Below, in pieces: positions 1 through 29,031 of a stretch of 64,000 nt of DNA. Within the stretch, counting starts at the first letter, position 1, and the number at the start of each line of letters is the position of its first letter. The position numbers and the translations under genes were made by a program. Source of the DNA: Rebecca billardiae RCC1528 (lineage: Eukaryota > Protista > Haptophyta); NCBI GenBank assembly GCA_965240325.2, contig OZ251231.1:1054001-1118000 (forward strand), written 5' to 3'. The notes beneath the pieces are model-generated. The model searched no databases and was not told where the DNA came from. It saw nothing but the letters and a program-made list of their open reading frames with translations.

Positions 1-192
1 GGCCTGGTCGTTCACAGGCGCGACGCTGCTCGCCTCCGCCACGGACACGGAGCGCACGCACCAGGTGGTTGCGCGGCGCGCTGCGCTGTGCTGCGCGTGC
101 GCGGGCGGTCGGGCCGTGCTGCCGCGTCGGCGCGCGCGCTGAGTCCGCACGCCGCTGCGATGCCGTGACGGATTGACATTGCGTGCAGCGTG

Positions 193-193
<1 letters not shown>

Positions 194-237
<44 letters not shown>
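194..237. repeat. (CTG)n microsatellite, probably intronic
   Basis: Direct run of GCT/CTG triplets; explains the spurious poly-A/L/C/Q ORFs. Confidence 0.9.
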
Positions 238-362
238 GCGCGCGACGCACGCGTCGAGTCGAGTCGCCCCGATCCGGCCTCCGACCCCATCCGCGCGCCG
301 ATCCCCGCCGCACCCGCCTCGCCTCCGCGCCGTCTGCCCGCGCGCGCGCCGTGCGCACACAG

Positions 363-1831
363 GTACTGGAGGACGTGTACCCCGAGGATGTCTACTTCCG
401 CTTCAACGTGGAGCACGCGCTGTGCGCCGGGCCGATGGACGTGACGACGGCCGAGGCGCTGGCGGAGTACAGGCGCATCGCGCGGGACTACTGCGAGGGG
501 CAGAGCGCGCGCTTCGAGCAGCTGGCGAGCCGGCTGCAGGGGCTCGACGCGCCGCCGCACGCGGAGGCGGAGGCGTCGGAGCGGACGCGGGTCGACGGGC
601 GCGGGATCGCGGCGTGGTGGCGCGCCCGAGCCGCGCGCCGCGCCGCGCTCGCGGCGGCCGCGGCGGCCGGCGGCGAGGCGGCAGGGGCGGCCGCGGGCTC
701 GGCCGGCGGCGGCGGGCCCGACGGCGGCGGGCCTGTGCGCAGGGGCGGCGCCGCGCTCGGCGGCGCCAACGACGGCGCAGCGGCGTGCGGCGCGGCCGGC
801 GCCGCGCGCCGGCTCGCGGACGCGGCCGCGCCCTCGCTCGCGCCCTCGCCGGTGCCCGTGCCTGGAGGGCCGCATCTCGCGGAGGAGATTGCGCCCGCGC
901 GGCGTGCCATCCACCACACGCTGCGTGTGCGGCTGCTCTCGCGGTGCGCGCGCGTGCGCCCGCCGAAGGCTGGCCCGAGCCGTCCGCGGCGCGCGCGCCG
1001 TGCACGCCCGCGGCGCTCACCGCACGTCGCACCGCGCCGCGCCGCGCGCGCCGCGCGCGCCCCTCCGCCGCTCGCCGCAGCCTCGTCGCCGACGGCGGGC
1101 AGACGTCCGGCCTCTCGCGCTTTGCGGACGCGGTGTACACCTCGTGCGAGGGCGGCCACGAGCGCTTCGCGCGCACGATGACGTTCCTGAGCTGGCTGCA
1201 GGCGGCGCTGCACGAGGCGGCCGAGCGCGACTCGGCGCTCACGGACGCGCGCGAGGGTCGACTGCTCACGCAGTCGGTGGGCGTGGTCTCACACCTGGCG
1301 GAGCCGTACACCGCGTTTCTCCGCGACGGCGGGCTCGCGCCGACGCTGCTCACGCGCCCGCCGGGCGCTCGGCCGATCGTCGCGGTGCAGCTCGAGCCGC
1401 TGCTCCCGCCGCTCGACCTGCCGCTCAGCGCGCACGCGAGCGGCACGTCGGTGGGCGCGGTGAACGACGCGCTGCGCGACGCGATGCGCTGGGCGGCCGA
1501 CGCGATCGGCGGCGTGAAGGACGCGCTCGCGCAGACCGTGCTGGGGCAGGAGTCGCGCGCGACCGCCACGCCGTGCCCGACGGTCTCGGACCACGCGTGC
1601 GCGGCGCGCGGCGCGGCGCCGCTCTCCGCGCCGACGATCCCTGCCCCTCTGGGCGGTGGCGGCGGCGGCGCGCCCCTCGCGGCCGGCTCTGGCGCCGCCT
1701 CGGCCGCGCCGGAAGACGGGGCCGCCGCGGATGCGTCGTCGTCTGCAGCACCGCCCTCTGCCAGTCAGGGCGCTGCCACGGACACGGCAGCCACTCTCGT
1801 TGACGCCGGCACGGTCCTCCACTCGGCGTAA
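363..1831 (+). CDS. 3' exons of a spliced gene, probably a patatin-like phospholipase (exons ~363-943 and 1081-1831; 5' exons not identified)
   Basis: Acceptor CACAG|G at 362. The exon reads LEDVYPEDVYFRFNVEHALCAGPMDVT...LAEYRRIARDY, resembling the C-terminal YFRFN...D motif of patatin/iPLA2 proteins. A phase-2 donor CG|GTGCGC at 944 joins acceptor CGCAG|C at 1080 in frame to stop TAA at 1831. Confidence 0.45.
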
Positions 1832-2509
1832 CTCAGTGACGCGTGCCACCGCCAGATGATGCGAGCTAGTCCGACACGCTCGCAATGCCAGCAGCCCAGC
1901 AGGCAGCGCTGGCATCGTACTACCAGGAAGAGCCGTTCGTGCGCTCCGGCGGCGTCTGGACTCTGATGGTGCCGCGCCGCCTCAGCTCGCGCGCGCGCAT
2001 GACGACTGAATTATTGTGCGCGATCGATGCTGCGCGCTATACTATACGACTGATGTCTCGAGACGCGACGACTAGCTCTAGCGACTACGACTGCGCCGCG
2101 GACGGTCCGGCGGACGGAGCTACAGGGCCTAGGGAGTCTAGGCGCGGGTGCACCGCCCCCGCGGGGCCCCCAACTACGTACGCGTACGTAGCAGTACGTA
2201 TAGCTGATGATAGCAGTCTGTTAGGGAATATGGACCCGAGTTTCTGCTACCCATATTACCTTCATAGGGGAAATGTTTTCTATAGGGATTTTTGGCCCTG
2301 TCGGCCGTAGCGATGGTAACACCCCGGTCACCCGCCCGCGCAGGCACGCGAGGGACTGCGGCTCGACAGCGCGCGCGTCAGGCGCGCGCGCGCGGCGGCG
2401 GCCGCGCGGCGGCGCGCCGCATCGCCGCCGTGACGCCGTCGGCGTCCTGAGTCAGCGGCGCGGTCGGTCCGCGGCGGCACTCCTGGGCCGGCGGGCCCGG
2501 GCCTCGCGG

Positions 2510-3270
2510 CCCGGGAGGAGGCCCCCTGTAACAGCTGTAACACCGTAACACGTAACAAGTCCGGCTCGTCCGAGTCCGGGGCTGCCGGCGGGCCGGCCGC
2601 GCCGGGCCCGGGAGGAGGCCCCCTGTAACAGCTGTAACACCGTAACACGTAACAAGTCCGGCGCGTCCGGGTCCGGGGCTGCCGGCGGGCCCGGGCCTCG
2701 CGGCCCGGGAGGAGGCCCCCTGTAACAGCTGTAACACCGTAACACGTAACAAGTCCGGCTCGTCCCGGAGTCCGGGGCTGCCGGCGGGCCGGCCGCGCCG
2801 GCGGCCCGGGACGGGAGGCCCCCTGTAACAGCTGTAACACCGTAACACGTAACAAGTCCGGCGCGTCATCCGGGTCCGGGGCTGCCGGCGGGCCCGGGCC
2901 TCGCGGCCCGGGAGGAGGCCCCCTGTAACAGCTGTAACACCGTAACACGTAACAAGTCCGGCTCGTCCGAGTCCGGGGCTGCCGGCGGGCCGGCCGCGCC
3001 GGGCCCGGGAGGAGGCCCCCTGTAACAGCTGTAACACCGTAACACGTAACAAGTCCGGCGCGGCGAGTCCGGGAGCCGGCCGGTCCGGGGCCGCGGCGGG
3101 CGGGCCGCCGGGCCCGGGAGGAGGCCCCCTGTAACAGCTGTAACACCGTAACACGTAACAAGTCCGGCGCGGCGAGTCCGGGAGCCGACCGGTCCAGGTC
3201 CGGGGCGGGCGGGCCGCCGGGCCCGGGAGGAGGCCCCCTGTAACAGCTGTAACACCGTAACACGTAACAC
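2510..3270 (+). repeat. Tandem array of 8 units (97-109 bp) with invariant core TGTAACAGCTGTAACACCGTAACACGTAAC
   Basis: Core starts at 2527, 2624, 2721, 2824, 2924, 3021, 3130 and 3239. Each is preceded by GGAGGCCCCC; GC-rich linkers fall into types A, B, A', B', A, C, C'. Confidence 0.95.
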
Positions 3271-3538
3271 AATGGCGCCGCTCGGCCATGGCCCGTCGTC
3301 GGCCCGGTGAAAAAATGGCGGCGGGGCGCGCGGCGCGCAGCGTCGCGCTCGGTGCGCTCGGCGGGGCTCGAGGAACGACTGCGGACGGGCGAGCGCGCAC
3401 GGGCGCGAGCACGAGTCGCGTCGCCCGCGCCCCTCCCCGAGCGACCTGCCGCCGCGTCTCGCGACGATGGCGGTGTGGACGCTCGTCCGTGGCCGCGTGA
3501 AAAAATGGCGGCGGGGCGCGCGGCGCGCAGCGTCGCGC
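3113..3538 (+). repeat. Left arm of ~425-bp inverted repeat (pairs with 5021-5449)
   Basis: Near-identical reverse complement of 5021-5449 with a few substitutions/indels. Contains two GTAACA cores and two copies of GTGAAAAAATGGCGGCGGGGCGCG 190 bp apart. Confidence 0.95.
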
Positions 3539-3800
3539 TCGGTGCGCTCGGCGGGGCTCGAGGAGCGCCCGCGGACGGGCGAGCGCGCACGGGCGCGAGC
3601 ACCGCGGCGGTTCGCGTGGCGTCGCGCTGCACCGACCCCGGCGCGAGCGCCGAGTCCTTGTTTGCACGCCGCCTCGTTTGCCGAGCCCGTCGGCCGACGG
3701 CGCGAGGTGGGCGCGGCGGCGGCGGCGGCGGCGGCGGGGCGGCGGCGGCGGCGACGGCGACGGCGCGCGGGCGCATGCGCGCTGCACGGCCGCCGCGTCG

Positions 3801-5054
3801 TCAACGCGCCGGGCCCATCGCGGCACGGCCGCTGGCGAACGCGGCGTGGAAGCGCGAGGCAAACTCGGCGATGCGGGGCGGCGCGCCCGTGCGGCCGCCG
3901 CCCGCGCAGAAGAGCATGCTGCGCAGGCAGACGGCGCGCGCGTACCCGGCGCCGCGCGCTGGCACGCACGCCTCGTCGGCGCAGCACAGGTCGAGGCCGT
4001 CGGACTTGGCGAAGTAGAAGACGGTGCGTCGCGCGTGCTCGGCGCCCTTGCACTCGCACCACCTGCTGGCGGTCGAGCACGTCGCGACCGGGCCGTGCGC
4101 CGTGCTCCCAGCAAACACCTGCACGATGCGCGGCCAGCGCTCGGCCGAGCCAGAGACTCGTGCGTGCGCGTGCAGCTGCTCGTTGAGCCAGCCGACCAGC
4201 GCCGCGCGCCGCGCGCCGGCCGCCGCATCGCGACCGGCGGCGCTCGTCGCCGGCACAGCCGGTCGGCCGGGCGCGGGCGGCGGCGCGCTCCACTCGACCA
4301 GCTCGGTGCGCAGCCGCGCGCGAGAGAGCCAGCGCGCGCCATCCGCCGCGAGCCGCCGCAGCGCGTGCTGCGCAGGCAGCGCGTCGAGCCACGCGCAGCG
4401 CACGGCGCCGTGCTCGTCGGCGGCGACGACGGCTGCCGGCAGGTAGGGCGGGCCGCCGTCCGACTTGGCCGTGAACGGCAGGCGCAGGCCCGCCCCGTAG
4501 ATGCTGCAGTCGATCTCGAGCTTGTGCCAGCACGGCGGCCGCGGCTGCGAGCGCGCCCAGTCGTGCAGGACGCGCGCGATGCGCGCCGCCTCAGCGGCCG
4601 AGATGATGGCCGAGTCGTTCCATGTCGCGTGAATCCCGGCTCGGCGCACGCCCGGCGCCGAGCCGGCGGCGGTCGCGGGGCTGGGCGCGCGCGCCGAGAC
4701 GTACACGACGCGCCCAGCCACGGGAACGGGCACGGGCAGATGCTCCTCCGCGACGCGGTAGAGGCCGACGAGCAGTGCGGCCACGTCCGAGGGGGAGGGC
4801 GCGGTGCTGAAGGCGCAGTCCACATCGACGACGAAGCGCGCGCGCGCGCCGAGCGCCTCGACCACCATGGGCGCGCGCGCGCCGTGCACCAAGTGCTGCG
4901 CGGCCACGAGTGCATCGAGCTCGCGCAGGCGGCTGCTCGGCACGTGCAGCCGGCCGCCGAACGTACGCTGCGAGCCACTTGCCAGGAACACAACCTCGTG
5001 CGTGCACGCCTCGCCTGGGCGCGCGACGCTGCGCGCCGCGCGCCCCGCCGCCAT
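3801..5054 (-). CDS. Archaeo-eukaryotic primase/primase-polymerase (PrimPol / NCLDV A468R-like AEP) with C-terminal UL52-type zinc finger, 417 aa, intronless
   Basis: ATG at 5054 in AAAAAATGGCG. AEP motif I RFVVDVD, motif II GIHATW, motif III IDCSIYGAGLRLPFTAK. N-terminal THEV...GGRLHVP...MVVE resembles NCLDV primases. C-terminal SRWCECKGAEH..RTVFY...LCCADEAC fits the C-H-C-C PrimPol/UL52 zinc finger. Confidence 0.8.
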   Translation of the reverse strand: MAAGRAARSVARPGEACTHEVVFLASGSQRTFGGRLHVPSSRLRELDALVAAQHLVHGARAPMVVEALGARARFVVDVDCAFSTAPSPSDVAALLVGLYRVAEEHLPVPVPVAGRVVYVSARAPSPATAAGSAPGVRRAGIHATWNDSAIISAAEAARIARVLHDWARSQPRPPCWHKLEIDCSIYGAGLRLPFTAKSDGGPPYLPAAVVAADEHGAVRCAWLDALPAQHALRRLAADGARWLSRARLRTELVEWSAPPPAPGRPAVPATSAAGRDAAAGARRAALVGWLNEQLHAHARVSGSAERWPRIVQVFAGSTAHGPVATCSTASRWCECKGAEHARRTVFYFAKSDGLDLCCADEACVPARGAGYARAVCLRSMLFCAGGGRTGAPPRIAEFASRFHAAFASGRAAMGPAR

Positions 5055-5449
5055 TTTTTCACGCGGCCACGGACGAGCGGCCACTGCGCCATCGTCGCGA
5101 GACGCGGCGGCAGGTCGCTCGGGGAGGGGCGCGGGCGACGCGACTCGTGCTCGCGCCCGTGCGCGCTCGCCCGTCCGCAGTCGTTCCTCGAGCCCCGCCG
5201 AGCGCACCGAGCGCGACGCTGCGCGCCGCGCGCCCCGCCGCCATTTTTTCACCGGGCCGACGGGCCGCGGCCGAGCGGCGCCATTGTGTTACGTGTTACG
5301 GTGTTACAGCTGTTACAGGGGGCCTCCTCCCGGGCCCGGCCCGGGCGGCCCGCCCGCCCCGGACCTGGACCGGTCGGCTCCCGGACTCGCCGCGCCGGAC
5401 TTGTTACGTGTTACGGTGTTACAGCTGTTACAGGGGGCCTCCTCCCGGG
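5021..5449 (-). repeat. Right arm of ~425-bp inverted repeat; includes the AEP start codon and 2 GTAACA cores
   Basis: GTTACGTGTTACGGTGTTACAGCTGTTACAGGGGGCCTCCTCCCGGG at ~5288 and ~5403; CCATTTTTTCAC at 5051 and 5241. Confidence 0.95.
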
Positions 5450-5755
5450 GCCCAGCGCCACCCGCCCGGCCCCGGCCCCGGACCCGGACTGGCCGGCAAC
5501 GGGCCGCGAGAATCCGAGACCGACGGTCTCAAGTGAAAGTGATGGCTGACAGTGTGCTCAGCCAGGGTTTAGTCAGGCGGCGTGGCTCGGTCAGACACCC
5601 GCAGTCCGGGTGAGTCCGGCGTGAGAGTGTTACATGTTACTGCTACGCTCGGCCCGTAACACTTTTCACGGGCGCGACGGGGGTGAGTAATAGTTAGAGG
5701 AATTGTTACCCGGGAGAAACTGGGGTCCTTGGTCGTCTGTTATTGGTTCTACGTC

Positions 5756-5756
<1 letters not shown>

Positions 5757-5846
<90 letters not shown>
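5757..5846. repeat. (TA)45 microsatellite
   Basis: Pure TA run between the subterminal IR and the 3' hairpin of the putative element. Confidence 0.98.
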
Positions 5847-5849
<3 letters not shown>

Positions 5850-6346
5850 ACTACGGACGAATAAAAGTACGACCGCGCCTGAGCGGAACGCGGCGCGGTC
5901 ATTCATGCGATAAATATAACTTCAATTAATATATCGCCCGCGCGCGCATGGCGCACGTGCGCCCGGGGGCACGCGCCCGCGGGGGCGCTGCATACGACGA
6001 CTACTTCGAGACGACGGCTGACGACGCGTGGCACCGCGACCACCGCGGTAGCGCGCGCGCGTCGACGCCAGACGGTGCGTCGAGCTTCCGCTCGGCGATG
6101 GAGTGATGGGCGACTACGAGGGGGGGGGACGACGGCGAGGAGCGCTGATCCTGGTGTTTGTCTCTGCTGCTCGATCTGCTGCTACAGCTTGCTGACTCTG
6201 ACGCCTGCCCGTTGCATCTGACCACGTCGTTAATATATGTAATGTTACTAATGATGATGAGTGTGCGTGTCAGTACTCATGATGATGAGTGTGCGTGTCA
6301 GTCGTCACCGAGTCAGGCAGTAGTCTCGGACGAAGTGTGCGGTATT

Positions 6347-6955
6347 TATTGGGTAAACGCGAGCTCCGAGCGTCTCGAGCCCTGCTAAGAGCTCACCGGC
6401 GCGTCCTCGGGCGCGTCGTCGATGTTGACCACGAGAGGCAACCTCCTTCCCTTCGCTCCTTTACGAAGACAAGCTAACCTCCCGCCGACCTTTTGGTCGC
6501 GGGGTGACCACGTCGCGGCCGGCTCCGGGGAATGCGTTACCTTCCCGAAAACCGCCCGTCCCGACGTAACTCCCGGACGTCCTCGTCCGTCCACCCTCAG
6601 CCGGATTCCCACTTTTCCGAAAGTGGAAATCCGGATGGACTCCCACGATGGCGTCCGGGCCATGCCCGTGCGACGTCACCGTGTCGCGCTGCGCCGGGCC
6701 GTACCGCCCGCGCACGCGCCGCGTCCGTGTCGCTCCGCGTCCGCGCTGCCGCGTCCGCGCTCCGCGTCCACGTCGATCCGCGCCAGCGCTGCTGCGCTCG
6801 CGCTCCTGCCGCCGCGCGCGCCGCGCGCGCGCGCCGCCAGCCAGCCACTGCTCCGTAGCTGATGACGCCGGCCCGCCTGGTGCGGCGCCGGCCCTGACGT
6901 CCCAGCGGCGACGCCATCTGCTGAGATGCGCGCCCCAGGCCGCGTCAGCTCAACA
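6347..6955 (-). repeat. 3' LTR of copia element (TGTTG...CAATA on minus strand)
   Basis: Direct repeat of 12885-13493; PPT adjacent. Confidence 0.95.
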
Positions 6956-6991
6956 CCCCCCCTCGACAGCCATAGCCGCGAGCTGCGCCGC

Positions 6992-9900
6992 TTACCGCGC
7001 GCGCGTCGGGTGTCGGTCCACCATGATGGCGTCGACGTGCCGCTTGAACGTCGCACCGTCCGTCGCCTTCGTCATGATGTCAGAGTGGTTGAGTGAGGTG
7101 TGTACCTTGACCACCTTCACCTTGCCACCCTCCTGCGCGTCACGCACATAGTGATGCTTGATCTCGATGTGCTTCGAGCGCTTGTGGTGCACAGGATTCT
7201 CCACGAGGTCGATTGCCCCCTTGTTGTCCTCTCGCACCTCCGTCGCGCCCCGCGGCGGCTGCCGCATGGACTCGAGTATGCTCCGCAAGTAGCTCACCTC
7301 GCGGCAGCAATCGCTCAGCGCGACGTACTCCGCCTCCGTCGAGCTCAGCGAGACTGTACCTTGCAGCCCGCTGTGCCACGACACCGGCGCACCATTGTAG
7401 AACACAATGTATCCACCCGTCGACCTGCCCTTGGTCTCCACCGGATTGCTTGCCCAATCGGAGTCAGCGAAAGCAAGTAGGTCGGGGTGCTCGGAATCTG
7501 TCGCAAACTTGAACAAGATTCCCAATCGCGGGCATCCACGTAAGTAGCGCAGCACGCGCTTCGCACTTACCAGATCCACCGCCCGCGGACGTGACATGCG
7601 TCGCGTCAGCATGTTCACCGCGTGCGCGATGTCCGGCCGCGCCGTGACCATCGCAAACATGAGACATCCCACCATCGCCTGGTAGTTCTCAATCTCCGCG
7701 CGCTGCAGCAACGCCTCATCGTCGTCGCTCAGCTGCGCCCGCGCCGCCGGCTCCGGCGTGCGCGCCGGCGTGCTCGCGTTCAAACCGAACCGCTGAAGCA
7801 CGCTCTCGACGTACGGCCCCAGATGCATCAGGATGCCGTCGTCATGAACTTCAAACACGGCGCCCAGGAACTTATCGAGCCGCTCACTCAGCTTGATCTC
7901 GTAATGCTCCTTCAGGTCAGCCGCCAGCTTCTCCACCGCGCGCGCGTCGCGCGTCAGGTTGAGAAACAGCAAATCGTCGACAAAGCCGCCCGCGATGATG
8001 AACTCGCCCGGCGCCGACTCCTTGACGTAGATGCACGGCGCACTCGGACACTCCGAGAAGCCGCGCGCGAGCAGCTGGGTGCGGTGCGTGCGATGCCACG
8101 CGCGCCCAGACTGGCGTAGACCCGGATACGCCTTGAGGCTCCGGCCCACGACTTTGTACCCCGGCGGCGCCTGCGTGCTCGGCACGTAGCCCGGCGGGAA
8201 TGAGAAGAGAGGCCGCTCATCCGGCTTCAACTCCGAGTTGAGGTACGCGTCCTTGACGTCGCCCTTCGACAGTATGCCCAGCGCCGCAACCGACGCTGCT
8301 CCCAAGTCGACCCTCGCGCCCGCCTGCTGAGCGGCGATCGCAACGAGTAGTCGCACTTGTTCCGGCCGGATCGTCGGAGCAAAGACCTCCTGAAAGTCGA
8401 TCCCCGGCCGCTGTAGGTTCCCCAGTAGCACCGACCGCGCCTTGAAGCGCGTCACCTCGCCCTCCGGGTTCGACTTGACGTCAAAGACCCATTGGCTCGG
8501 CAACACCCGCGTGCCCTCCGGAACCACCACCTCTTCCGAGGTGCCGAGCAACTTGTGACCTTCCAAGTGCTCGAGCATGGCGCCCTGCCACTGGGGCGCC
8601 TCCGCCGACCGCATCGCCTCGCGATAGTTCGTCGGCACCTTCACGTTGATCTTCTGGAACACCGACGCGGCGCTGACGACGGCAGTAAGCAGCTGCGGCC
8701 GTCGGCGCGACGTCCGATCCCTGCGAAGCGGATCGTGTCCCATATCCAGACCGGGCGGCGGCGCGTCCTCGATCACGCCGTCGTCACCGTCTGCGCCGCG
8801 CGGCGGCCCGCCAGCATCTGCTGCGGCCCCGCGCCGTGATTCCGTCGGCGGTATCTGATCCTGCCGACCCGGCTGCGTCATCGACGCGCCTGCCCCGTCA
8901 CGCCCGCCCTGCGGCGTCGGCGTCGACGGCTCTGCGCCAGCGCTGCTGCACCCGCGATGTCCCGCGTCCACGCTGCTGCGCCCGCGCCCCGACGTTGACG
9001 CATCTGCGTCGTCGTCGTACCCGACGTCGAACTCTGTCGCGTCGTCATTCCCGGCGTCGGCTGGCGTCTCGCCGCCGTCGCCGTCCTCGTCCTCACAGTC
9101 GGCGTCACCACCGACCGGACGAAGTCCGCCGCTTACCGCGGCGCCGTCACCATCACCCACGTACGCGCCACCGTCAGGTGCGCCCAGCGACGAGTGCCCC
9201 CCCTCGACCAGGTCGGTCTCGTCGATGCGTACGTCACGTGAGTGAACGAGACGTCCGTCGTCTAAACGACATACGTACCCGAGTACGTAGCGCCATGTAC
9301 CGCGCCACTGCACGCCGTGCCCACCCCAGAGATAGACACGTCCGGGTAGTGCGCGCTGCCTCAGCTGCCCCAATGCATTGCGCCGTGCGCCCAGCATCAG
9401 CACGCGGCAGCGCGCTCCAAACGCCACGTGATGCTTCCACGTCGGGCGTTTGCCAAAGAACAGCTCATCCGGCGTGAGCCACTCAATGTCGCCATCGTCA
9501 CGAATGATACCACGTGACGCCAGTCGATTGCGCGACGCGCATGCGTGCCACGCCGCGTAGTGCCAATCGACCCTCGAGACTCCACGCGCAACGACCGTGG
9601 CGCGCAGTCTCGACTTCAGCGTGCGGATAGCGCGTTCCGCCACGCCATTCGAGCTCGGCGAGTCGGGCGCCGACGTGACCGTCGACGAGAACCCAAGCTT
9701 CGCCAGCTCACCCTCGACGTACGTACTCAGCAGCGTCGAGCCACCGTCGGTGTGAATATGGCGTCGCGCCATAGTACACCCCGACGCCAGGACCCAATGC
9801 GACATGTGCATGGCCCCTGTACCAAGCAACTGCGCGTACCAGCGGAATGCCCGACCAACCTCGGCGTCATCCAAGCTGCGTAGCGCGTACACTTGCCATC

Positions 9901-10276
9901 GACGTGAATGCCCATCGATGAATATGATCCCATGAGGATACCCTCCACGCGCGCCATCGGCCCCAACTGGTAAGTCGATGCGTGCCATGGAGAAGATGTC
10001 GACGTGCGTCACCTGCCCAGGGTAGTGCGCCGTCGGCATTGCGTCCGCGAACGGCCGCCGCGTCATGCCCGCCGCCGACTGCTCGTCGAGCGACTCACGC
10101 CGCGCGTTCGCCCCCTCCATCCCCTCGGCCACGCGTCGCGTGCGCTCGAGTAGACGTTGGTCATTGGTGCCCGTTCGAACCGACCAAGTGCGCAACCACG
10201 CCGGATCAGCGCCTCGCGCCGCCTCCGTAGTGTTTGTGGTTCGCACCTGCGCGGGTTCCGGGCTTAGGCGTTTGGG
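6992..10276 (-). CDS. pol: Copia Pol (integrase - reverse transcriptase - RNase H), probably reached by -1 frameshift from gag-PR
   Basis: IN: VTHVDI / IHTDGG / SNGVAERAIRTL. RT: WVFDVK...RFKARSV, GDVKDAYL, GLRQSGRAW, FVDDLL. RH: FADSDWA, SSTEAEY, EDNKGAI, HKRSKHIEIKHHYVRD. Confidence 0.93.
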   Translation of the reverse strand, partial: PKRLSPEPAQVRTTNTTEAARGADPAWLRTWSVRTGTNDQRLLERTRRVAEGMEGANARRESLDEQSAAGMTRRPFADAMPTAHYPGQVTHVDIFSMARIDLPVGADGARGGYPHGIIFIDGHSRRWQVYALRSLDDAEVGRAFRWYAQLLGTGAMHMSHWVLASGCTMARRHIHTDGGSTLLSTYVEGELAKLGFSSTVTSAPDSPSSNGVAERAIRTLKSRLRATVVARGVSRVDWHYAAWHACASRNRLASRGIIRDDGDIEWLTPDELFFGKRPTWKHHVAFGARCRVLMLGARRNALGQLRQRALPGRVYLWGGHGVQWRGTWRYVLGYVCRLDDGRLVHSRDVRIDETDLVEGGHSSLGAPDGGAYVGDGDGAAVSGGLRPVGGDADCEDEDGDGGETPADAGNDDATEFDVGYDDDADASTSGRGRSSVDAGHRGCSSAGAEPSTPTPQGGRDGAGASMTQPGRQDQIPPTESRRGAAADAGGPPRGADGDDGVIEDAPPPGLDMGHDPLRRDRTSRRRPQLLTAVVSAASVFQKINVKVPTNYREAMRSAEAPQWQGAMLEHLEGHKLLGTSEEVVVPEGTRVLPSQWVFDVKSNPEGEVTRFKARSVLLGNLQRPGIDFQEVFAPTIRPEQVRLLVAIAAQQAGARVDLGAASVAALGILSKGDVKDAYLNSELKPDERPLFSFPPGYVPSTQAPPGYKVVGRSLKAYPGLRQSGRAWHRTHRTQLLARGFSECPSAPCIYVKESAPGEFIIAGGFVDDLLFLNLTRDARAVEKLAADLKEHYEIKLSERLDKFLGAVFEVHDDGILMHLGPYVESVLQRFGLNASTPARTPEPAARAQLSDDDEALLQRAEIENYQAMVGCLMFAMVTARPDIAHAVNMLTRRMSRPRAVDLVSAKRVLRYLRGCPRLGILFKFATDSEHPDLLAFADSDWASNPVETKGRSTGGYIVFYNGAPVSWHSGLQGTVSLSSTEAEYVALSDCCREVSYLRSILESMRQPPRGATEVREDNKGAIDLVENPVHHKRSKHIEIKHHYVRDAQEGGKVKVVKVHTSLNHSDIMTKATDGATFKRHVDAIMVDRHPTRAR

Positions 10277-12885
10277 GGCGGCGCAGCGCCAACGCGCCCC
10301 CGCCCCGCGCCCACGCGCCGCACTGGCGCCCTGCGCCGTGCGCGCGCCTCCGCCGGCGCATCGCCGACGTCCGGCCCCACCTGGCGCCGTACGATCTCGG
10401 CGCGCAGCGTGGAATCGCGCGGCAGCTGCACGACGCCGCCTCCCAGCGCCGTAAAGTCCGCAGTGTTGCCGCGCTGCGAGTAGTGGAACTCGATGCCTGC
10501 GTCTGCGCAGTGCTCGACCGACAGCAGCGGCGCCGTGACGCGCCGCGACGCCCACGCCTCGATCTCGAGCGTGAGGACCTTGTCGCTGTCGTCGTCCGCC
10601 GCAAGCTTGACCACCAGGGTCCCGCGGTGAGTGACCCGCTCCCGCGCACCGTTCCCCCACTCGATCTGACATGCGCCGTCCACCGGGGTAAGATTCGTCA
10701 AATCCTCGGCCATGGCGATGTTCTTCCGTGCGCCAGTGTCAAACACCAACGCCCGCGTGTTGTCCTCCGGCGGCGCCCCGCGTGCCTCGGCCGCCCGCGC
10801 CGCGACGATCTCGATGTCCTCGTCGCGCTGCGCCCTGCCGCCGATAGCCGCGCCAATAGGCGCCAAGCCGAGTCTGGCGCCGGCGCCGCCGCCGTCTCCG
10901 GCGTCAGCGTCACCGTCGCCACCAACGGCGCCGTCTGGCTCGTCCCCCTGCTCGGGAGCGAACGCGACCTGCGTGCGGACCGTGCCGCCGCCGTTGCCAT
11001 TACCGACCACGGCGCGGGTGCTGCCCCCGCCACCGCCGCCGCCACCGCCACCGCCGCTCCGATGTGAGCCACGGCTGCGATCCGACCGCGTCGACGCCGC
11101 GTCATCGCCAGCGTTCGAGTCGCGATCAGCCTGCGTCACCTGCGGGCAGTAACGCTTGATATGCCCCACGGCGCCGCACTTGTAGCAGCGCGGCCCGTGC
11201 GCGTCGTCGGAGTCGTCCTGGCCTCCGCGGCCGGCGCCGCGGCCAGTGCCGCCGCCGCCACCGCCACGACCTCCGCCGCCGCCACCACGGCCAGCCGGCG
11301 ACTTCGTGTCGCCGCCGCCGCCACCCGCCGACGCCGCCGCCGCCTGCGCCAGGCGGAGCCCGTCGATTGGGTGCGCGCGGGTAGCGCCGCCGCCTCCTGG
11401 CGTGCGGCCACCCGCCCCTGGGCGCCCAGGGCCGCCGCGGTCAACCCGCTTGCCCTTGGAGAAGTCCCAGTCCTCGAACTTGCCGTTGAGCTCGTGCACG
11501 AGCTCCTGCACGTCGAAGTTCGTCACGGTCCTGTAGTCCTTCGACTCGTACCGCGTCCGCATCTCGATGCCCGCGCCCACCGACGGAATGAACTCGATGA
11601 GCCGCGCAAGCATCTCCGCCGCTGGCGCTGCGTCACTCAGCTCCTGCAGCAGCACGTGGTTGTGCTGTAGCACCTGGAAGAGCTCGAGGGCGCCGACGCC
11701 GTCCTTGCCGCAGTCCGGCAGGACCGTCCGATGCCAGCGTGCCCGCACCGACATGTACTTCCGCATGTCGTCGGGCTTGCGCATGCGCAGGATCGTCTTC
11801 CACAGGTACAGAAACTCGCGCCCCGGCGTAAGTGCGCCCCGGCGCGCGCGCTCCTCCTGCACCTCCGGCTGCGTCTCCATGAGGCGGTTGATGTGCTGCC
11901 ACGCAGCCTCCGTCACCCACGACCGCAGCTCGGTGCGTAAGAAAGCCGTCCCTTTCTCGTACTGCGCCCCGGCGTACTTGGCGGGGTCCGCCTCGTCGCC
12001 GTCCGGCGCTGCCTCCAACACGCTCTGTCGGAGTTTGATGTCCAGCATGGCGTGCTCGCTCGCCTGCCGCTCATGCATCTGATCCTCGGTCTCGCGCTCG
12101 CGGCGGTAGAGCTCACGCGCGCGCGGATCGAGCGTCACGGCAGCGCCGCCCGCGGGCGCCGCGCCACCCATCCCGCCGGCGCCGCCCGTAGGCGCCGCGC
12201 CGACGCCGGCGCCGCCCGCAGGCGTCGTGCCGTCAGTCCCAGCCGGCGCACCTGCCGCGCCGCCTGTGCCCACACCCGGACCGGGTGTGCCGGCCGCCGG
12301 ACCCGGAGAAATTCCGGATCCGCCGCCCGCCGCCGGACCTGAACCCGGTCCGGTCGCCGTCGGGCCGCCCGGAGTGGCTAAACCACTCCCCGCGCCCGCC
12401 GAGGCAGCCTGCGCGTAGCTTGGCGCCTGCCTCGCCCCCGCCGCCGCCGCCGCCGCGCGTTCCGCCGCGGCCCGGCGCTCGGCGTGCTCGCGGCGCTCGT
12501 GCTCGTGGCGATGGTCGAGCAGCCGCTGCTGCAGCGCGTAGTTCTCACGCGCCAGGTCCATCCGCTCGGCACTGACCTTGATCATCTTCGCCGCGGATGG
12601 GTTGAATGTCTCCCACGTCGAGTTGTACTCCTCGAGCGTGTTGATGCGGTGCTCCGCGTTCGGGCCGTGCGTCACGATGATGCCGTTCAGTGCGGACATC
12701 GTAGCACCTTGCCCCGCCGGAAGCGCCGCCAGCTTGCTCGCCGATTGCGCGAGCCAACGCTGCTGATTACCTTTGTCGTTGAGGCTCCCAACGTCGACCG
12801 AGCCGTAGTACCGGCCGCTCGTGCTCATCGGCGCGATCGATGAGAAAGCGCCGCGCGTACGATCCCTCCCGATCGCTGCATGCAT
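10264..12885 (-). CDS. gag: Copia Gag-protease polyprotein (true start probably MSTSGRYY)
   Basis: Zinc knuckle CYKCGAVGHIKRYC; aspartic protease LVFDTGARKNI...IEWGNG...PLLSV; stop TAA at 10264-10266. Confidence 0.88.
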   Translation of the reverse strand: MHAAIGRDRTRGAFSSIAPMSTSGRYYGSVDVGSLNDKGNQQRWLAQSASKLAALPAGQGATMSALNGIIVTHGPNAEHRINTLEEYNSTWETFNPSAAKMIKVSAERMDLARENYALQQRLLDHRHEHERREHAERRAAAERAAAAAAGARQAPSYAQAASAGAGSGLATPGGPTATGPGSGPAAGGGSGISPGPAAGTPGPGVGTGGAAGAPAGTDGTTPAGGAGVGAAPTGGAGGMGGAAPAGGAAVTLDPRARELYRRERETEDQMHERQASEHAMLDIKLRQSVLEAAPDGDEADPAKYAGAQYEKGTAFLRTELRSWVTEAAWQHINRLMETQPEVQEERARRGALTPGREFLYLWKTILRMRKPDDMRKYMSVRARWHRTVLPDCGKDGVGALELFQVLQHNHVLLQELSDAAPAAEMLARLIEFIPSVGAGIEMRTRYESKDYRTVTNFDVQELVHELNGKFEDWDFSKGKRVDRGGPGRPGAGGRTPGGGGATRAHPIDGLRLAQAAAASAGGGGGDTKSPAGRGGGGGGRGGGGGGTGRGAGRGGQDDSDDAHGPRCYKCGAVGHIKRYCPQVTQADRDSNAGDDAASTRSDRSRGSHRSGGGGGGGGGGGSTRAVVGNGNGGGTVRTQVAFAPEQGDEPDGAVGGDGDADAGDGGGAGARLGLAPIGAAIGGRAQRDEDIEIVAARAAEARGAPPEDNTRALVFDTGARKNIAMAEDLTNLTPVDGACQIEWGNGARERVTHRGTLVVKLAADDDSDKVLTLEIEAWASRRVTAPLLSVEHCADAGIEFHYSQRGNTADFTALGGGVVQLPRDSTLRAEIVRRQVGPDVGDAPAEARARRRAPVRRVGAGRGRVGAAPPPNA

Positions 12886-13493
12886 ATTGGGTAAACGCGA
12901 GCTCCGAGCGTCTCGAGCCCTGCTAAGAGCTCACCGGCGCGTCCTCGGGCGCGTCGTCGATGTTGACCACGAGAGGCAACCTCCTTCCCTTCGCTCCTTT
13001 ACGAAGACAAGCTAACCTCCCGCCGACCTTTTGGTCGCGGGGTGACCACGTCGCGGCCGGCTCCGGGGAATGCGTTACCTTCCCGAAAACCGCCCGTCCC
13101 GACGTAACTCCCGGACGTCCTCGTCCGTCCACCCTCAGCCGGATTCCCACTTTTCCGAAAGTGGAAATCCGGATGGACTCCCACGATGGCGTCCGGGCCA
13201 TGCCCGTGCGACGTCACCGTGTCGCGCTGCGCCGGGCCGTACCGCCCGCGCACGCGCCGCGTCCGTGTCGCTCCGCGTCCGCGCTGCCGCGTCCGCGCTC
13301 CGCGTCCACGTCGATCCGCGCCAGCGCTGCTGCGCTCGCGCTCCTGCCGCCGCGCGCGCCGCGCGCGCGCGCCGCCAGCCAGCCACTGCTCCGTAGCTGA
13401 TGACGCCGGCCCGCCTGGTGCGGCGCCGGCCCTGACGTCCCAGCGGCGACGCCATCTGCTGAGATGCGCGCCCCAGGCCGCGTCAGCTCAACA
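12885..13493 (-). repeat. 5' LTR of copia element
   Basis: Direct repeat of 6347-6955. Confidence 0.95.
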
Positions 13494-13696: not shown

Positions 13697-16597
13697 TCAC
13701 GCCTTTTGAGCACTGCGCTCGGCGGCAGGAGAGCCAACGGTGGCCGTTGCGGTGACCGGCACCTCCGGAACGGAGTTGGGGTTTTCCTGGTCGGGCTCGG
13801 GCGCCACGGAGATCTTGATGGCGTTGGCGCGCCGGGCGAAGTACACGGCGCAGGCAGCGAGAGCGCAGATGGCGACTGCGCCTCCGCCCACGATCAGGCC
13901 GACGGCGAGCGCGCCCAGCAGCGGCGCGGAGGGAGCCAGAGTGGCAGAGCTTGACGTGCTGCCGCCGCCGCCCCCGCCGCCTCCGCCGCCTCCTCCGCCG
14001 CCGCTGCTGCCGCTCGAACCACTGCCGTCCGAGTCGCCATCGCTCGCAGAGGGCGGGAGCATCACCCGGCTCACGGAGACCGCGACCACAGCCGTCCCCG
14101 TTGCGGACGCGACGGAGCTGCCAATCGCCTCGGCACGCGCCTGCACGAGCTCGGCGAGCGCGTCGACCGTCGGCGCCTGCGCGGCGCTCGCCTCGGTGTG
14201 CAGCACGTCGAAGATGATGGTCACGCTCGAGTCGATGACAGCGAGCAGCTCGACCTCGCTCGTCGTCACGTTGAGCGCGCTCGCGACGCCCTGCTTGAAG
14301 TTCTCGCGCTGCTGCTGCCCGGACTCGGAGCTCTCGTCCCAGTCGCTCGCGGAGCCCTCCAGCGTCGCCTCGGAGCGCACGCGCGCGATGCTGGTGTCGC
14401 CCGCCATCGGCGGGAGCGGCGGCGGACTCGGCGGGGGCGAGTACACCGCGTAGTCGACGGCGTACAGGTTCCACAGCGCGTGCGCGTTCGAGCTCTCGTT
14501 CCACGCGCTGCAGCAGCGGCAGCCCCACCCCTGCTGCGAGGGCGCAAACATGATCACGTCGCAGCCCGCGGCAAAGGCCAGGCTGCCGCACTCGCTCAGG
14601 TCGACCTCGCTGAAACCCAAGCTCTGGGTGACGCACTCGCGCTCGGCGGAGAGCAGGGTAGCGACTGGGCGTCCAGGCGGCAACGGCGGCTGGGGCGGCG
14701 GCGGCGTGGGCGGCGGACTCGGCGGGGGCGAGTACACCGCGTAGTCGACGGCGTACAGGTTCCACAGCGCGTGCGCGTTCGAGTTATCGTCCCACGCGCT
14801 GCAGCAGCGGCAGCCCCACCCCTGCTGCGAGGGCGCGAACATGATCACGTCGCAGCCCGCGGCAAAGGCCAGGCTGCCGCACTCGCTCAGGTCGACCTCG
14901 CCGAAACCCAAGCTTTGCGTGACGCACTCGCGCTCGGCGGAGAGCAGGGTGGCAACTGTGCGTCCAGGCGGCAACGGCGGCTGGGGCGGTGGCGGTGGGG
15001 GCGGCGCCGGTAGGGGTGGCGGCGTCGGGGGCGTCGGGGGCGTCGGGGGCAGCGGGGGCGAGTACACCCCATACTCGACGGTGTACAGGTCCCACGACGC
15101 GTGCGCGTTCGAGTTCTCGTCCCACTCGCTGCAGCAGCGGCACCCCCAGGCGGCCCAGTTCTCCGTCGAGTGCATGATCACGTCGCAGCCGAAGGCGCCG
15201 CGTAACTCATACGCCGCGCTCGCGCACTCGCTGAGGTCGATCAGGCCCAAGAACACGCTTTGGGAGACGCACTCGCGCTCGGCGGAGAGCAGGGTAGCAA
15301 CTGGGCGTCCAGGCGGCAGCGGCGGCTGGGGCGGCGGCGGTGGGGGCGACGGCGTTGGGGGTGGCGGCGGCCGGGGCGTCGGGGGCAGCGGGGGCGGCCG
15401 AGATGGCGGAGGCAGCATCGGTGGCGGCGATGGCGGCGATGGCGGTGGCGACGAAGATGGTGACGGCGGCGGGCTGTGCGTCGGCGGTGGCGAGTAGGTC
15501 GAGTAGGACAACCTGTACAGGTTAGAGCCCCACAGACGGCCCTGCGTCTCGGACCACTCGATACAGCAGCTGTAGTCATCCCCCAAAGAGAAGGTGTCGT
15601 AGGGATCCCAAGTGGAGGTGTACGCGACGACCTCGCAGTCGGCCGTTGCTGCCGCCAGCTGCGCAACCTCGTGCAGCTCGTGGAAGAAGCCGAGCCACTC
15701 GCCCCAGACGTCGCAATCCTGATACTGGACGAACAGCTCGAGGTCCCACCGCCCGGGCGGAGACGGAGGAGACGGAGGCGGGGACGGAGGAGACGGCGGC
15801 GGAGGCGGCGGAGGCGGTGACGGCGGTGGCGAGGGTGGCGGCGACGACGGCGGAGGCGGCGACGGTGGGGAAGGCGGCGACGCGGGCGGCGGCGGCGAGG
15901 GCGGCTCGAACTGGTAGTACTCCGGCTGGTACAAATTGTGGGCGTAGTCCCAGCCAGTCGAGGTCCAGGTAATGCAACACGCGCATGAATAAGAATAACC
16001 GTTCCACTGGAAGACCTCGCAGGATGCGCCAGCTGCCGCAGCAGCGCATCCCTCAAGGCCACCGAACGAGTAGAGGCTGGACTGGGTGGTGCATGACCGC
16101 TGCTCGAAGAGCAGGGTGGCGGTCCAGCGGCCAGGCGGCGGCGCGGGCGGCGATGGTGGCGGCGATGGCGAAGGCGGCGGGCTTGGCGACGGCGGTGGAG
16201 GGCTTGGGGGTGGAGGGCTCGGTGGTGGACTTGGCGGGGGCGGCGGCATGTAAGCAGCGAACGCGTTCGTGTAGAGGTCGTTCGACGAGTACGTCCCCTC
16301 GCCCTCCTCGGACACGCGCTCGCAGCAGAAGCAGTCTCCGCGCCAGTCGTCCCACTCGAAGACCTCGCAAGGCCACGTCCGCTCCCAGGACCGACGCGTC
16401 CATGCCGCGCACGATTCGAGGTCGGGTGCGCCGTACCACCGCCCCGTATGACCGAACTGGTTCGAGTTTGGCCCGTACTCCAGGCACCTCTCGTTGGCGC
16501 GGTAGAGCACGGGGCGCATGCGCCCTGGCGGCGGCGGTGAAGCGACGTGCCAATGACCGGGGGCGGACACCCCGAGGGCCACAGCGAGAGCGAACAT
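13697..16597 (-). CDS. Type-I membrane/surface glycoprotein: signal peptide, six Cys-rich ~65-aa modules separated by SPPP/extensin-like linkers, C-terminal TM helix
   Basis: N-terminal MFALAVALGVSA. Modules show C..., L..C, C-[DE]-V, C-x-C-C-like and [ND]LY patterns. Pro-rich linkers; hydrophobic LLGALAVGLIVGGGAVAICALAACAVYF followed by basic residues. Last two modules are a near-identical 291-bp duplication. Confidence 0.8.
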   Translation of the reverse strand: MFALAVALGVSAPGHWHVASPPPPGRMRPVLYRANERCLEYGPNSNQFGHTGRWYGAPDLESCAAWTRRSWERTWPCEVFEWDDWRGDCFCCERVSEEGEGTYSSNDLYTNAFAAYMPPPPPSPPPSPPPPSPPPPSPSPPPSPSPPPSPPAPPPGRWTATLLFEQRSCTTQSSLYSFGGLEGCAAAAAGASCEVFQWNGYSYSCACCITWTSTGWDYAHNLYQPEYYQFEPPSPPPPASPPSPPSPPPPSSPPPSPPPSPPPPPPPPSPPSPPPSPPSPPGRWDLELFVQYQDCDVWGEWLGFFHELHEVAQLAAATADCEVVAYTSTWDPYDTFSLGDDYSCCIEWSETQGRLWGSNLYRLSYSTYSPPPTHSPPPSPSSSPPPSPPSPPPMLPPPSRPPPLPPTPRPPPPPTPSPPPPPPQPPLPPGRPVATLLSAERECVSQSVFLGLIDLSECASAAYELRGAFGCDVIMHSTENWAAWGCRCCSEWDENSNAHASWDLYTVEYGVYSPPLPPTPPTPPTPPPLPAPPPPPPPQPPLPPGRTVATLLSAERECVTQSLGFGEVDLSECGSLAFAAGCDVIMFAPSQQGWGCRCCSAWDDNSNAHALWNLYAVDYAVYSPPPSPPPTPPPPQPPLPPGRPVATLLSAERECVTQSLGFSEVDLSECGSLAFAAGCDVIMFAPSQQGWGCRCCSAWNESSNAHALWNLYAVDYAVYSPPPSPPPLPPMAGDTSIARVRSEATLEGSASDWDESSESGQQQRENFKQGVASALNVTTSEVELLAVIDSSVTIIFDVLHTEASAAQAPTVDALAELVQARAEAIGSSVASATGTAVVAVSVSRVMLPPSASDGDSDGSGSSGSSGGGGGGGGGGGGGGSTSSSATLAPSAPLLGALAVGLIVGGGAVAICALAACAVYFARRANAIKISVAPEPDQENPNSVPEVPVTATATVGSPAAERSAQKA

Positions 16598-26920: not shown

Positions 26921-27406
26921 TTGCGAGCCTCGTCAACCGGGTACTGTACTGTAATCTTACCAAACTGCCGATGATTGAGTCATTGTCTCATTGACTCATT
27001 GAGTCATTGTACGGCGGAAGTTCTACCGTTGTACAGTACGCGTCGTCGTGGCGGGTTTCCGAGTAGCTCGCGGCCTGGCCCTGCTGGTGGTCTGCACGCT
27101 AACGCGTGCTGGGCGCAGAGTGAACATCCGCCCCGCCTACATCTCCGTCGGTGGGCAGCCGTGCCGGCCCGTCCCCCACCCGCGCTGGACCGTGCTGCAC
27201 ATCCCCAAGTCTAAATTGCCAAGTTGAAGTGCGGCGCTCGGTCCGCAGGTCCGCTGTGTCGTCAAAGTAGAGTTGTCAAGTCCGAAGTCGGGACGGGACG
27301 GACGTGACTCGGCTTTGACTATGCGATGGTGATGCACGGGCTGGCGAGCGGCACCGCCCGCTCGCGCCTTCTCGTACAGTACTGAGCGCGACGAAGCAGC
27401 TTATTA

Positions 27407-29031
27407 TGGCCCGCGGTGCAGGGCGGAGCGCGCAGCGTGGAGCCCGCACCAGCGGGCCCGAACCACGTTTCAAAAAGATCTTTGATCAAGAAAAAAGGGA
27501 CGGGGGACGATTTTCATGGCTGGAGGAGACCGAGTTTCGAATTTTGAGACCCTCTCTAACACGCATCACGGCCGAAAAAGGTCGCGCCCACAACAAGTTC
27601 ATAGTAAAGCGTGGAGTGACGCCCGTCCAAAACACTTCACGCCCTTTAGGATCCCTAACGTAACGAACCGTTACAAGCGATTTTTCCGGCCAATGAGATT
27701 GCAGCAAGGTCCAAGGAGCGATGACGTATATAGATAGAGATTGCCGCGAACCGATGTGGCCATGTACGTCCCTTGAATCAGTTGAATCAACTATTCAATC
27801 GCGCCGTGTCTGTATCAGGAGCCAACATGGCAAGGGTCAGTAGCCGATGCGCCAACTTCGGCGTATCTCAATAGTATCTGACACGAGTCTGGAGCCGGGG
27901 ACGGCTGCCCAGCAAAGCCAAACCTTGGTTGCTGCGCACTCTCCGCGAGAGGGTCAGCGCCAGCCGCACGAGCGACCGACGGGTGAGTACGGCGATGGGC
28001 AGGTGCGCGCGGCGAGTTGCGCCTGGAGCGCGCGGCTGTGGCGGGTCCCGACTGCCGTCGACATCGCGTTCGTGCCCCCGCTCACTCCGCGCGCCCCCGC
28101 CGCCCCGTGTCGATGCCTGCGCGCGGCCGCGCGGCCGTCGCCGGGGCGCCCCGGCCGCGCCGCGGCAGCCGCCCTGTATTCGGGCTCTCGCAAGCTCGGG
28201 GGCAGCGGCGCCTGATGCCGGACTGATCGATCTCTGAGTCTTCGACTTCACCACGCGCCGCCCTTGCCATGCCTTTCCGGGGAGCGCCGACGATCCGAGT
28301 CCATCGTCGACGGTCGACTCTGAGCGAGGGCTACGCCTCGGAACTGAACGGTACTCTACGAGGAGGACGAGCTGCGCGGGCGACGGTGGTGCGTGCCGTC
28401 CCCAGAGCTGGCTGTGCCTCTGCAACGCGTGCCGAGCCTGATCGAGGTGTGTCCGCCCGTGCACGCGCGGCGTGCGCGAACGATCTGTGACTGCGGTGCC
28501 CTCGAACCTCGGCCACTGCGTGCCGTCCCTCGGGCTGTCAGCTCCGCGTGGCCTGGCGTGCACGTAGAGTTGCGCTCATGCGTCGATCACGCCTCGCGCC
28601 CGCCTGTCGGCCGTCGCGCAGGCGCTGGTCGAACCCTACTCGGACCAGTGCAAATCATCTAACTATCCTGGCGCTGCCGGTGCGCGGTGACCCGGGACAG
28701 CGGTCACAGTCAGCAGCACGGCGGCCCGAACGAATCCGCGGCCCCGCACCGTGCTCCCTGGCTGTCAGCTTCGCGTGGCCTGGCGTGCACGTGGAGTCGC
28801 GCTCATGCGTCGATCACGCCTGGATACAATCGGCGCCGCGCCGGCGGCTGCGAAGTGCGATGGGCCCGCCCGCGGCGCGGCGGGCGGCGGCGCGCCGCTG
28901 GTGGAGTGAGTCTAGTTGTACGGGCATGCAACTCCGGGTCTGTCAATGGACGACTGCGACGGAGGGTGCACCGCCACCGCGGGCCCTGAACTACGTTCGT
29001 TCTACGGAAAAGGACCGCGGAACGCGGTCAT
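27407..29031 (+). mobile_element. Non-autonomous Helitron2/Helentron-like element
   Basis: 5' T-GGCCCGCGGTG (27408-27418) pairs perfectly with subterminal CACCGCGGGCC (28975-28985). A perfect hairpin GACCGCG-GAA-CGCGGTC (29013-29029) follows, then ATTT. 5' hairpin GCCCGC-acca-GCGGGC. First ~300 bp is homologous to 58237-58555. Confidence 0.7.

Follow-up and report, generated by a model that had tools for sequence, protein, structure and literature searches.

A lone virus-type primase gene between inverted cassette arrays in a haptophyte genome: a candidate family of selfish DNA units

Archaeo-eukaryotic primases (AEPs) of the clade of nucleocytoplasmic large DNA viruses (NCLDVs), herpesviruses and PrimPol are viral replication enzymes and one host repair enzyme. 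Iteron replicons with an AEP-type primase as initiator, such as those of ColE2-type Rep and the pRN1 prim-pol, are prokaryotic plasmids, and the Rep-iteron pairs of plasmids and geminiviruses have diversifying specificity. Long or subterminal repeat-rich inverted ends are found in foldback-type and Ac/Ds-type DNA transposons. To our knowledge, no compact chromosomal unit bounded by repeats is known in which an AEP primase of this clade is the only gene. Here we analysed a candidate for such a unit in a stretch of 64,000 nucleotides from the haptophyte Rebecca billardiae RCC1528 (contig OZ251231.1, positions 1,054,001 to 1,118,000), hereafter the window, in which positions are counted from the first letter. 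A model had earlier noticed the locus from the letters alone (the sequence-only reading) as a possible new mobile element or replicon. We tentatively favour the interpretation that 2224-5734 is a member of a small family of selfish DNA units composed of a lone primase gene, inverted cassette arrays and terminal inverted repeats. The observations behind it are an intact codon-adapted gene, conserved catalytic and zinc-binding residues, a layout that is conserved through a change of its motif, damaged sister copies and an insertion-like context.

The primase gene is real, intact and codon-adapted. It is the sole real open reading frame (ORF) of the compact, inverted-repeat-bounded unit, and the G+C content at its codon positions 1/2/3 (0.76/0.63/0.92) is as in host genes. 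The intronless ORF with AEP motifs I-III and a C-H-C-C finger that the sequence-only reading had described was confirmed (Table 1). In the window protein, motif I is DVD (aa 77-79), motif II is GIH (140-142), and motif III is D182 followed by GLRLPF (189-194). An exhaustive HMMER search of 1.84 billion representative proteins yielded only six relatives, and a word-indexed protein search with a 7-sequence profile gave no further ones. The catalytic residues are kept in all the relatives that cover the respective column (D77/D79 in 4/4, H142 in 4/4 and D182 in 6/6), and the zinc ligands C333, H340, C357/C358 and C363 are kept in the window protein, P0001, P0002, P0003 and P0006. P0001 is an intact relative of 452 aa with 36-41% identity (E 3e-37). 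Long ORFs that overlap the gene (904, 623, 555, 483 and 482 aa) are considered spurious, since their G+C content does not peak at third codon positions and they match no family.

The family of the protein was assigned through its relatives and its predicted fold. P0005 and P0006, which the same HMMER search linked to the window protein at E 2e-9 and 1e-4, both passed the gathering score of 23 of the Pfam family AEP_C962R (PF23162), with 27.8 and 43.2 bits. The window protein itself had no significant match to the AEP, PrimPol or UL52 profiles, so that the AEP assignment by profile stands for the relatives and not for the window protein directly. With the UL52 family PF03121, the sole match was P0006, and it was sub-threshold (13 bits versus a cut-off of 21). 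The search of P0006 against Protein Data Bank (PDB) sequences gave two chance-level matches to an unrelated protein (E ~0.25). When an AlphaFold model of the window protein with a pLDDT of 52 was submitted to Foldseek, nearly all matches were AEP primases. Among solved structures this model matched UL52 of herpes simplex virus 1 (HSV-1) at the top, with PrimPol of African swine fever virus (ASFV) also leading; among predicted viral structures it matched NCLDV C962R-like proteins, the foremost of which have 412-480 aa. In the metagenome, P0006 is encoded by the final gene of a 14.4-kb scaffold (L006 10001-11200), 30 nt from the contig end. The scaffold carries genes for a capping enzyme, NUDIX and TFIIS and looks like that of a giant virus (NCLDV-like); no cassettes were found around P0006.

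The PF23162 matches of the relatives, the conserved motifs and the fold matches together bear out the earlier proposal of a PrimPol/NCLDV-type primase. The window protein is predicted to belong to the AEP primases of the NCLDV/herpes/PrimPol clade and to bear a UL52-type finger; its sequence has diverged far from every characterised member. None of the six relatives is annotated as PrimPol-type or matches such a profile, and no PrimPol-like protein was among the best 50 solved fold matches. Because the relatives lack such an annotation or profile and the gene is multi-copy, the primase is, as judged by sequence comparison, neither the host PrimPol orthologue nor single-copy. A syntenic single-copy host PrimPol, named beforehand as the outcome that would speak against a mobile element, is thus not what was found; there are six relatives without a PrimPol-type annotation or profile, and several diverged members.

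The gene lies inside a long inverted repeat. Its arms, earlier estimated at ~425 bp, are 432 nt each and 95.9% identical with gaps, with a 242-nt core at 99%. The GTAACA arrays were found to face inward as described, with eight units on the left and two on the right. Each cassette of the left array consists of the frame GGCCCCCTG, four GTAACA motifs spaced 9, 8 and 7 nt, then AAGTCCGG and a second GTCCGGG. The gapped pattern of this frame has 8 matches versus 0.01 expected, and the 30-nt block of four GTAACA occurs 10 times versus 0 expected by chance. In the whole window, 34/34 GTAACA on the plus strand and 11/13 on the minus strand fall inside 2231-5903, and the motifs of the cassette frame are found almost only in the unit. 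The copied start context in the two units of 3291-3602 comprises the A-run, the ATG and the first 34 nt of the coding sequence (CDS). Near the ends of the unit, a 14-nt inverted repeat was recovered as the earlier reading had it, at 2232-2245 and 5715-5728; 13/14 of its positions are complementary, and its local alignment score is 23 versus a shuffle mean of 14.9 (sd 2.1). Isolated GTAACA motifs stand next to both copies. Rfam and tRNA scans of the region gave sub-threshold noise on the TA tract only.

Sister copies were detected in the same organism and elsewhere. Contigs of the runs ERR14847148 and ERR14847151 match host parts of the window at 100%, 99.9% and 99.97% identity across 2.8-4.2 kb, and this identity of 99.9-100% indicates that the two runs come from the window's organism. 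One member on a contig of ERR14847151 (L005) is ~31% identical in protein. Two further contigs (L004 and L011), with 69% DNA identity within the gene, come from ERR14847149 and ERR14847150, which are linked as sibling runs; the match of organism by identity covers ERR14847148 and ERR14847151. Other samples provided L001, L002/L003/L012 and L009. Intact copies are the one in the window and L001. L005 has the full-length span with one change of frame. L004/L011 are missing ~180 N-terminal residues and change frame twice, L002/L003/L012 are missing these ~180 residues as well and stay in frame over the remainder, and L009, truncated by the end of its contig, changes frame once. The window's organism therefore appears, counting L004/L011 by way of the sibling runs, to hold at least two diverged and damaged sister copies. 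One intact copy beside several damaged and diverged ones is what transposon families look like, as far as can be judged from these sequences. Two side observations concern the contigs themselves. Positions 1-24 of L002 and 1-17 of L003 look like a sequencing-adapter remnant, so that their first bases are not biological. At 1421-1524 of L001, downstream of P0001, two short motifs each occur twice with 43-54-nt spacing, without the cassette frame.

The cassettes of the members keep their frame and change their iterated motif. The frame, the four iterations and the orientation relative to the gene are common to the window, L005, L002/L012 and L004/L011, and the iterated motif differs per member (GTAACA, TGCAGG, CCGCAC and GTAAAGT). 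This similarity was established by targeted alignment; when the relatives' contigs were compared with the unit by short-word BLAST, only low-complexity noise came up. The cassette is upstream of the gene in L002 and L012, and also in L005, whose contig begins inside a repeating 111-nt unit. In L004/L011 it is downstream and inverted, and the contig breaks off within the iterated block, as an assembly would be expected to do on reaching an array. Downstream of the gene, L004 also carries an inverted copy of the start motif (ATG and GCG codons), like the left arm in the window, and in L002 the start motif of A-run and ATG is repeated and inverted too. The 9-mer ACCTTCATA at 2258-2266 of the window recurs in L002 and L012. 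These alignments suggest that gene and cassettes travel together and that the core motif co-varies with the member. By analogy with iteron replicons or transposon ends, a conserved frame with a changing motif fits a protein and its site evolving together. The earlier proposal of a mobile element or mini-replicon that has its own primase is strengthened by the gene-plus-cassette layout common to four diverged members; its mobility we infer.

Table 1. Features of the primase unit and its immediate flanks (window coordinates)
Feature	Position	Strand	Description
27404-type 3′ subterminal-like piece	2146-2191	+	palindromic subTIR-like 14-mer, AACTACG, 18-nt palindrome; outside the unit
Candidate target-site duplication, left copy	2216-2223	.	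8-bp direct repeat GTCTGTTA
Low-GC left terminal region	2224-2330	+	14-nt inverted repeat, 7-nt local inverted repeat around it, 9-mer ACCTTCATA, lone GTAACA at 2316
Left array	2487-3269	+	eight cassettes, 97-109 nt each
Left arm of long inverted repeat	3107-3538	+	last two cassettes and start-motif units
Two units spaced 190 nt (one full, one partial)	3291-3602	+	inverted primase start context in each
Unique spacer	3603-3800	-	presumed primase 3′ untranslated region; GCG-type triplet run 3710-3770
Primase gene	3801-5054	-	ATG to stop, 417 aa, intact, intronless
UL52-type C-H-C-C zinc finger	3966-4079	-	aa 326-363
AEP catalytic domain with motifs I-III	4407-4958	-	~aa 33-216
Right arm of long inverted repeat	5021-5452	-	true start codon 5052-5054, first 34 nt of CDS, presumed promoter
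Right array	~5263-5496	-	two cassettes of ~115 nt, GTAACA blocks on the - strand
Right terminal region	5497-5734	-	TGTTAC at 5628, 5635, 5704; GTAACA at 5656; 14-nt inverted repeat 5715-5728
Candidate target-site duplication, right copy	5735-5742	.	8-bp direct repeat GTCTGTTA
(TA)45 microsatellite	5757-5846	.	outside the unit if 2224-5734; inside in the 2230-5903 delimitation
GC hairpin and ATT terminus	5871-5903	+	subfamily signature as at 29013-29032

A selfish unit of this kind could work as follows. The right arm gives the primase its start codon, its first 11 codons and presumably its promoter; the left arm is an inverted copy, and the cassettes on the two arms face each other. By analogy, the cassettes may be cognate sites (iterons) bound by the unit's own protein, through the finger or through the variable region before the finger. 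The primase, as a site-specific initiator, would then lay primers on the arms, and host polymerases would copy the unit. Since no integrase, transposase or Rep is encoded in the unit, integration would have to be provided in trans. The copy in the window would have inserted at the 3′ end of a Helitron2/HINE-like element, with duplication of 8 bp of target DNA. A wider claim seems possible but doubtful to us: that the family represents a new eukaryotic class of selfish elements, in which a lone AEP primase reads member-specific iterons in its own inverted arms and primes copying, and in which the specificity diversifies within a genome. A non-exhaustive search of the literature found no eukaryotic element in which inverted iteron arrays enclose a lone AEP primase.

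Several results weigh against a family of selfish primase units. On the side of the protein, the window sequence alone had no significant match in Pfam (E up to 0.1), PHROGs or PDB sequences, its single NCBIfam match was a chance one (16 bits versus a 240-bit cut-off), the PDB search with the 7-sequence profile returned nothing, and the AlphaFold model is poor. On the side of the layout, the relatives' contigs are short (1.2-2.6 kb) and none spans both arms, and the start-motif units of the truncated L002/L012 are oriented opposite to those in the window. The 8-bp repeat is separated from the 14-nt inverted repeats by 8 and 6 nt, which leaves the ends less than clean, and chance alone gave the flanks a common 8-mer in 0.9% of shuffled sequences and in 3.4% of random window pairs. 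Neither a second copy with the same termini nor an empty site was found in the window or in scans of metagenome and viral contigs. It is also possible that the cassettes serve a host factor or have a purely regulatory role. The metagenome and viral contig scans were run with protein-derived patterns and with the 30-nt GTAACA block and were empty, and the P0006 scan of viral contigs gave nothing.

How the unit ends depends on a neighbouring element family. The full copy at 27404-29032 starts with ATGG, has an 11-nt subterminal inverted repeat (subTIR) at 27408-27418 with its complement at 28975-28985, and ends in ATT; its 3′ subTIR is 47 nt from the end, and a hairpin (29013-29029, z-score -5.1) lies 27 nt downstream of that subTIR. 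Further 5′ ends of this type were found at 58234 (+) and 35735 (-), and a hairpin with an ATT end near 57690-57710. In published HINEs, the subTIRs are 12-15 nt long and lie 2-4 nt from the 5′ end (PMC4067079), and the 3′ subTIR is ~38-60 nt from the 3′ end with a hairpin just downstream (PMC4067079, PMC2374699). Since the geometry fits these published hallmarks of HINE and DINE-1 (PMC4067079, PMC2374699), the 27404-29032 element and the related ends make a good Helitron2/HINE-like non-autonomous family. The 27404-29032 element also carries a small inverted GTAAC-type motif at 27659-27677.

Parts of this family flank the primase unit on both sides. The piece at 2146-2182 aligns with 28964-28999 with a score of 47 versus a shuffle maximum of 26, and 5885-5906 aligns with 29012-29035 with a score of 27 versus 21; the two pieces were compared with the 27404-29032 element separately. 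The hairpin at 5871-5900 has a 9-bp outer stem (z-score -3.7) and is followed by ATT at 5901-5903. Its likeness to the hairpin of the neighbouring element, which the sequence-only reading had pointed out, was confirmed by the terminal 10-mer CGCGGTCATT, which occurs exactly twice in the window, at the 5903-side end and at the end of the 27404-29032 element. From these alignments, the flanks of the unit look like two halves of one 27404-type 3′ end, ~3.7 kb apart, and the 8-bp direct repeat GTCTGTTA brackets what lies between. Because of both features, the more economical reading seems to be that 2224-5734 (~3.5 kb) is a separate unit, which inserted near the 3′ end of a HINE-like element and left an 8-bp duplication. 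The hairpin at 5871-5900 then more likely belongs to the disrupted neighbouring element. A read-through variant, in which the upstream element bypassed its weak end and captured the unit, is possible.

The sequence-only reading had instead placed the primase inside Helitron2-like ends of its own. Its coordinates were right within a base or two, with the start at 2231 one base inside the ATGG at 2230-2233; the assignment of the ends is doubtful, given the flanks and the bracketing repeat. In its strongest form this explanation takes 2230-5903 as one non-autonomous Helitron2/HINE-type rolling-circle element whose primase was captured or recruited and whose movement depends on a Rep-helicase gene located elsewhere. 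The primase might then, as the sequence-only reading proposed, prime second-strand synthesis on a rolling-circle intermediate. The 14-nt repeat does begin 2 nt downstream of the 5′ ATGG, a spacing also seen at the three 5′ ends of the 27404 family, and this placement matches the published HINE geometry (PMC4067079). Moreover, a 7-nt local inverted repeat surrounds the 5′ subTIR, an arrangement also known from DINE-1 (PMC2374699), central tandem repeats and microsatellites are known in HINEs and DINE-1 (PMC4067079, PMC2374699), and the hairpin and terminal 10-mer are of the same type as at 29013-29032. The 3′ side does not agree. There, 175 nt separate the repeat from the end (85 if the TA tract is left out), versus 38-60 in HINEs and 47 in the 27404 element, and the hairpin lies 142 nt downstream of the 3′ repeat, versus 27 nt in the 27404 element. 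A single rolling-circle element also leaves the 2146-2182 piece and the 8-bp direct repeat unexplained, and its subTIR sequence would be unlike that of the 27404 family despite the same hairpin. No other copy of the termini was found in the window, and none of its 28 ORFs of at least 350 aa has the Rep-helicase domain of a partner element, for which the earlier reading had suggested a search. We consider this explanation unlikely.

Still less probable is an immobile host gene family, in which an old giant-virus-derived primase was duplicated and is partly decaying, the cassettes are cis-regulatory and the long inverted repeat is a local duplication of the promoter region. In its favour, codon usage agrees completely with that of the host, the unit has ordinary host genes as neighbours, and no identical second copy is known. 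The scan of the unit and of the 28 window ORFs found no transposase, integrase or Rep/Rep-helicase domain, which also fits such a family. The behaviour of the cassettes is harder to accommodate: differing motifs in a conserved frame do not fit one shared transcription factor, and L004/L011 again show the inverted arrangement on the two sides of the gene. Truncation or a frame shift affects most sister copies, as in transposon families, and the window copy has terminal inverted repeats, a bracketing direct repeat and a recognisable element end that is split by the unit.

Least probable of all, and in our view very unlikely, is a dead relic of an integrated giant or small DNA virus, with the arms as remnants of viral terminal repeats and the primase as the last surviving gene: by profile and by fold the nearest relatives are NCLDV proteins, the scaffold of P0006 is NCLDV-like, and terminal inverted repeats made of tandem arrays are typical of pox-, asfar- and chloroviruses, but the unit is only 3.5 kb long with an intact ORF of third-position G+C 0.92, P0006 has no cassettes around it, the same compact layout recurs in diverged members, unlike a random relic, and no viral gene besides the primase was found in the 64 kb, where the flanks are host genes and a copia element.

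The DNA around the unit is eukaryotic nuclear DNA of ~70% G+C. Host genes in the window include those for a DEAD-box helicase, a proteasome ATPase, an amine oxidase and a tricorn-like protease. A host CDS at ~150-1831 (+), with a third-position G+C of up to 0.97 and no Pfam match, ends with a TAA at 1829-1831, ~400 nt before the unit. On the other side, 445 nt from 5903, begins a Ty1/copia long terminal repeat (LTR) retrotransposon (6348-13470, minus strand) with RVT_2 and zinc-knuckle ORFs; its LTRs have 0 mismatches over ~590 nt, which indicates a very young insertion. A Gly-rich long ORF at 13697-16597 is made of 291-nt tandem repeats and has no family match. A near-perfect 1-kb palindrome at 55885-56906 has 441-nt arms at 99% identity and a 140-nt loop and may be a foldback-type element, and a perfect inverted pair of 55 nt lies at 43661-43715 and 57812-57866, 14 kb apart.

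Compared with known primases, the window protein resembles the small AEP primases of NCLDVs (PF23162; the N-terminal Prim/Pol domain of ASFV C962R; chlorovirus-type proteins of ~400-480 aa) in its motifs I-III, its size class of ~400-450 aa and the Cys/His finger after the AEP domain. It differs from them in that its gene lies in a cellular chromosome with host codon usage and cassette arrays, and in that it has no significant profile match of its own. With herpesvirus UL52/UL70 and eukaryotic PrimPol it shares the two-module architecture and the C-H-C-C ligand pattern; UL52, however, is far longer, and in contrast to a housekeeping PrimPol orthologue the window gene belongs to a multi-copy and partly decayed family. 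A cautious reading is that a viral primase was horizontally transferred into a protist and then underwent amplification and decay, amid young Helitron2-like and copia elements.

The unit likewise resembles three kinds of elements without belonging to any. With HINE, DINE-1 and Helentron elements (PMC4067079, PMC2374699) it has in common 14-nt subterminal repeats 2 nt from ATGG, a core of tandem repeats, a microsatellite and a hairpin that stops 3 nt short of the end. HINEs, however, have no ORF, the 3′ repeat of the unit lies farther from the end than theirs, and rolling-circle insertion does not produce an 8-bp direct repeat. Foldback-type and Ac/Ds-type transposons share with it the tandem-unit arms of unequal length (8 versus 2), an inverted subterminal motif and a candidate 8-bp flanking duplication as in hAT, but the unit has no transposase and no clean terminal inverted repeat, and it has a primase cargo with its start codon inside an arm. 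Like replicons of the ColE2 and pRN1 type, it has a primase-type gene beside short direct-repeat arrays that differ between related replicons; in contrast to them it is integrated in a eukaryotic chromosome and is known here from sequence alone. The unit thus fails a defining feature of each of these groups, that is, HINEs, foldback/hAT-type transposons and iteron replicons. If the cassettes are the protein's own sites, the family would be a eukaryotic counterpart of the prokaryotic iteron-initiator replicons and a possible intermediate between viral replication modules and transposons, and its members would offer a natural series of protein-site pairs for how a primase gains sequence specificity.

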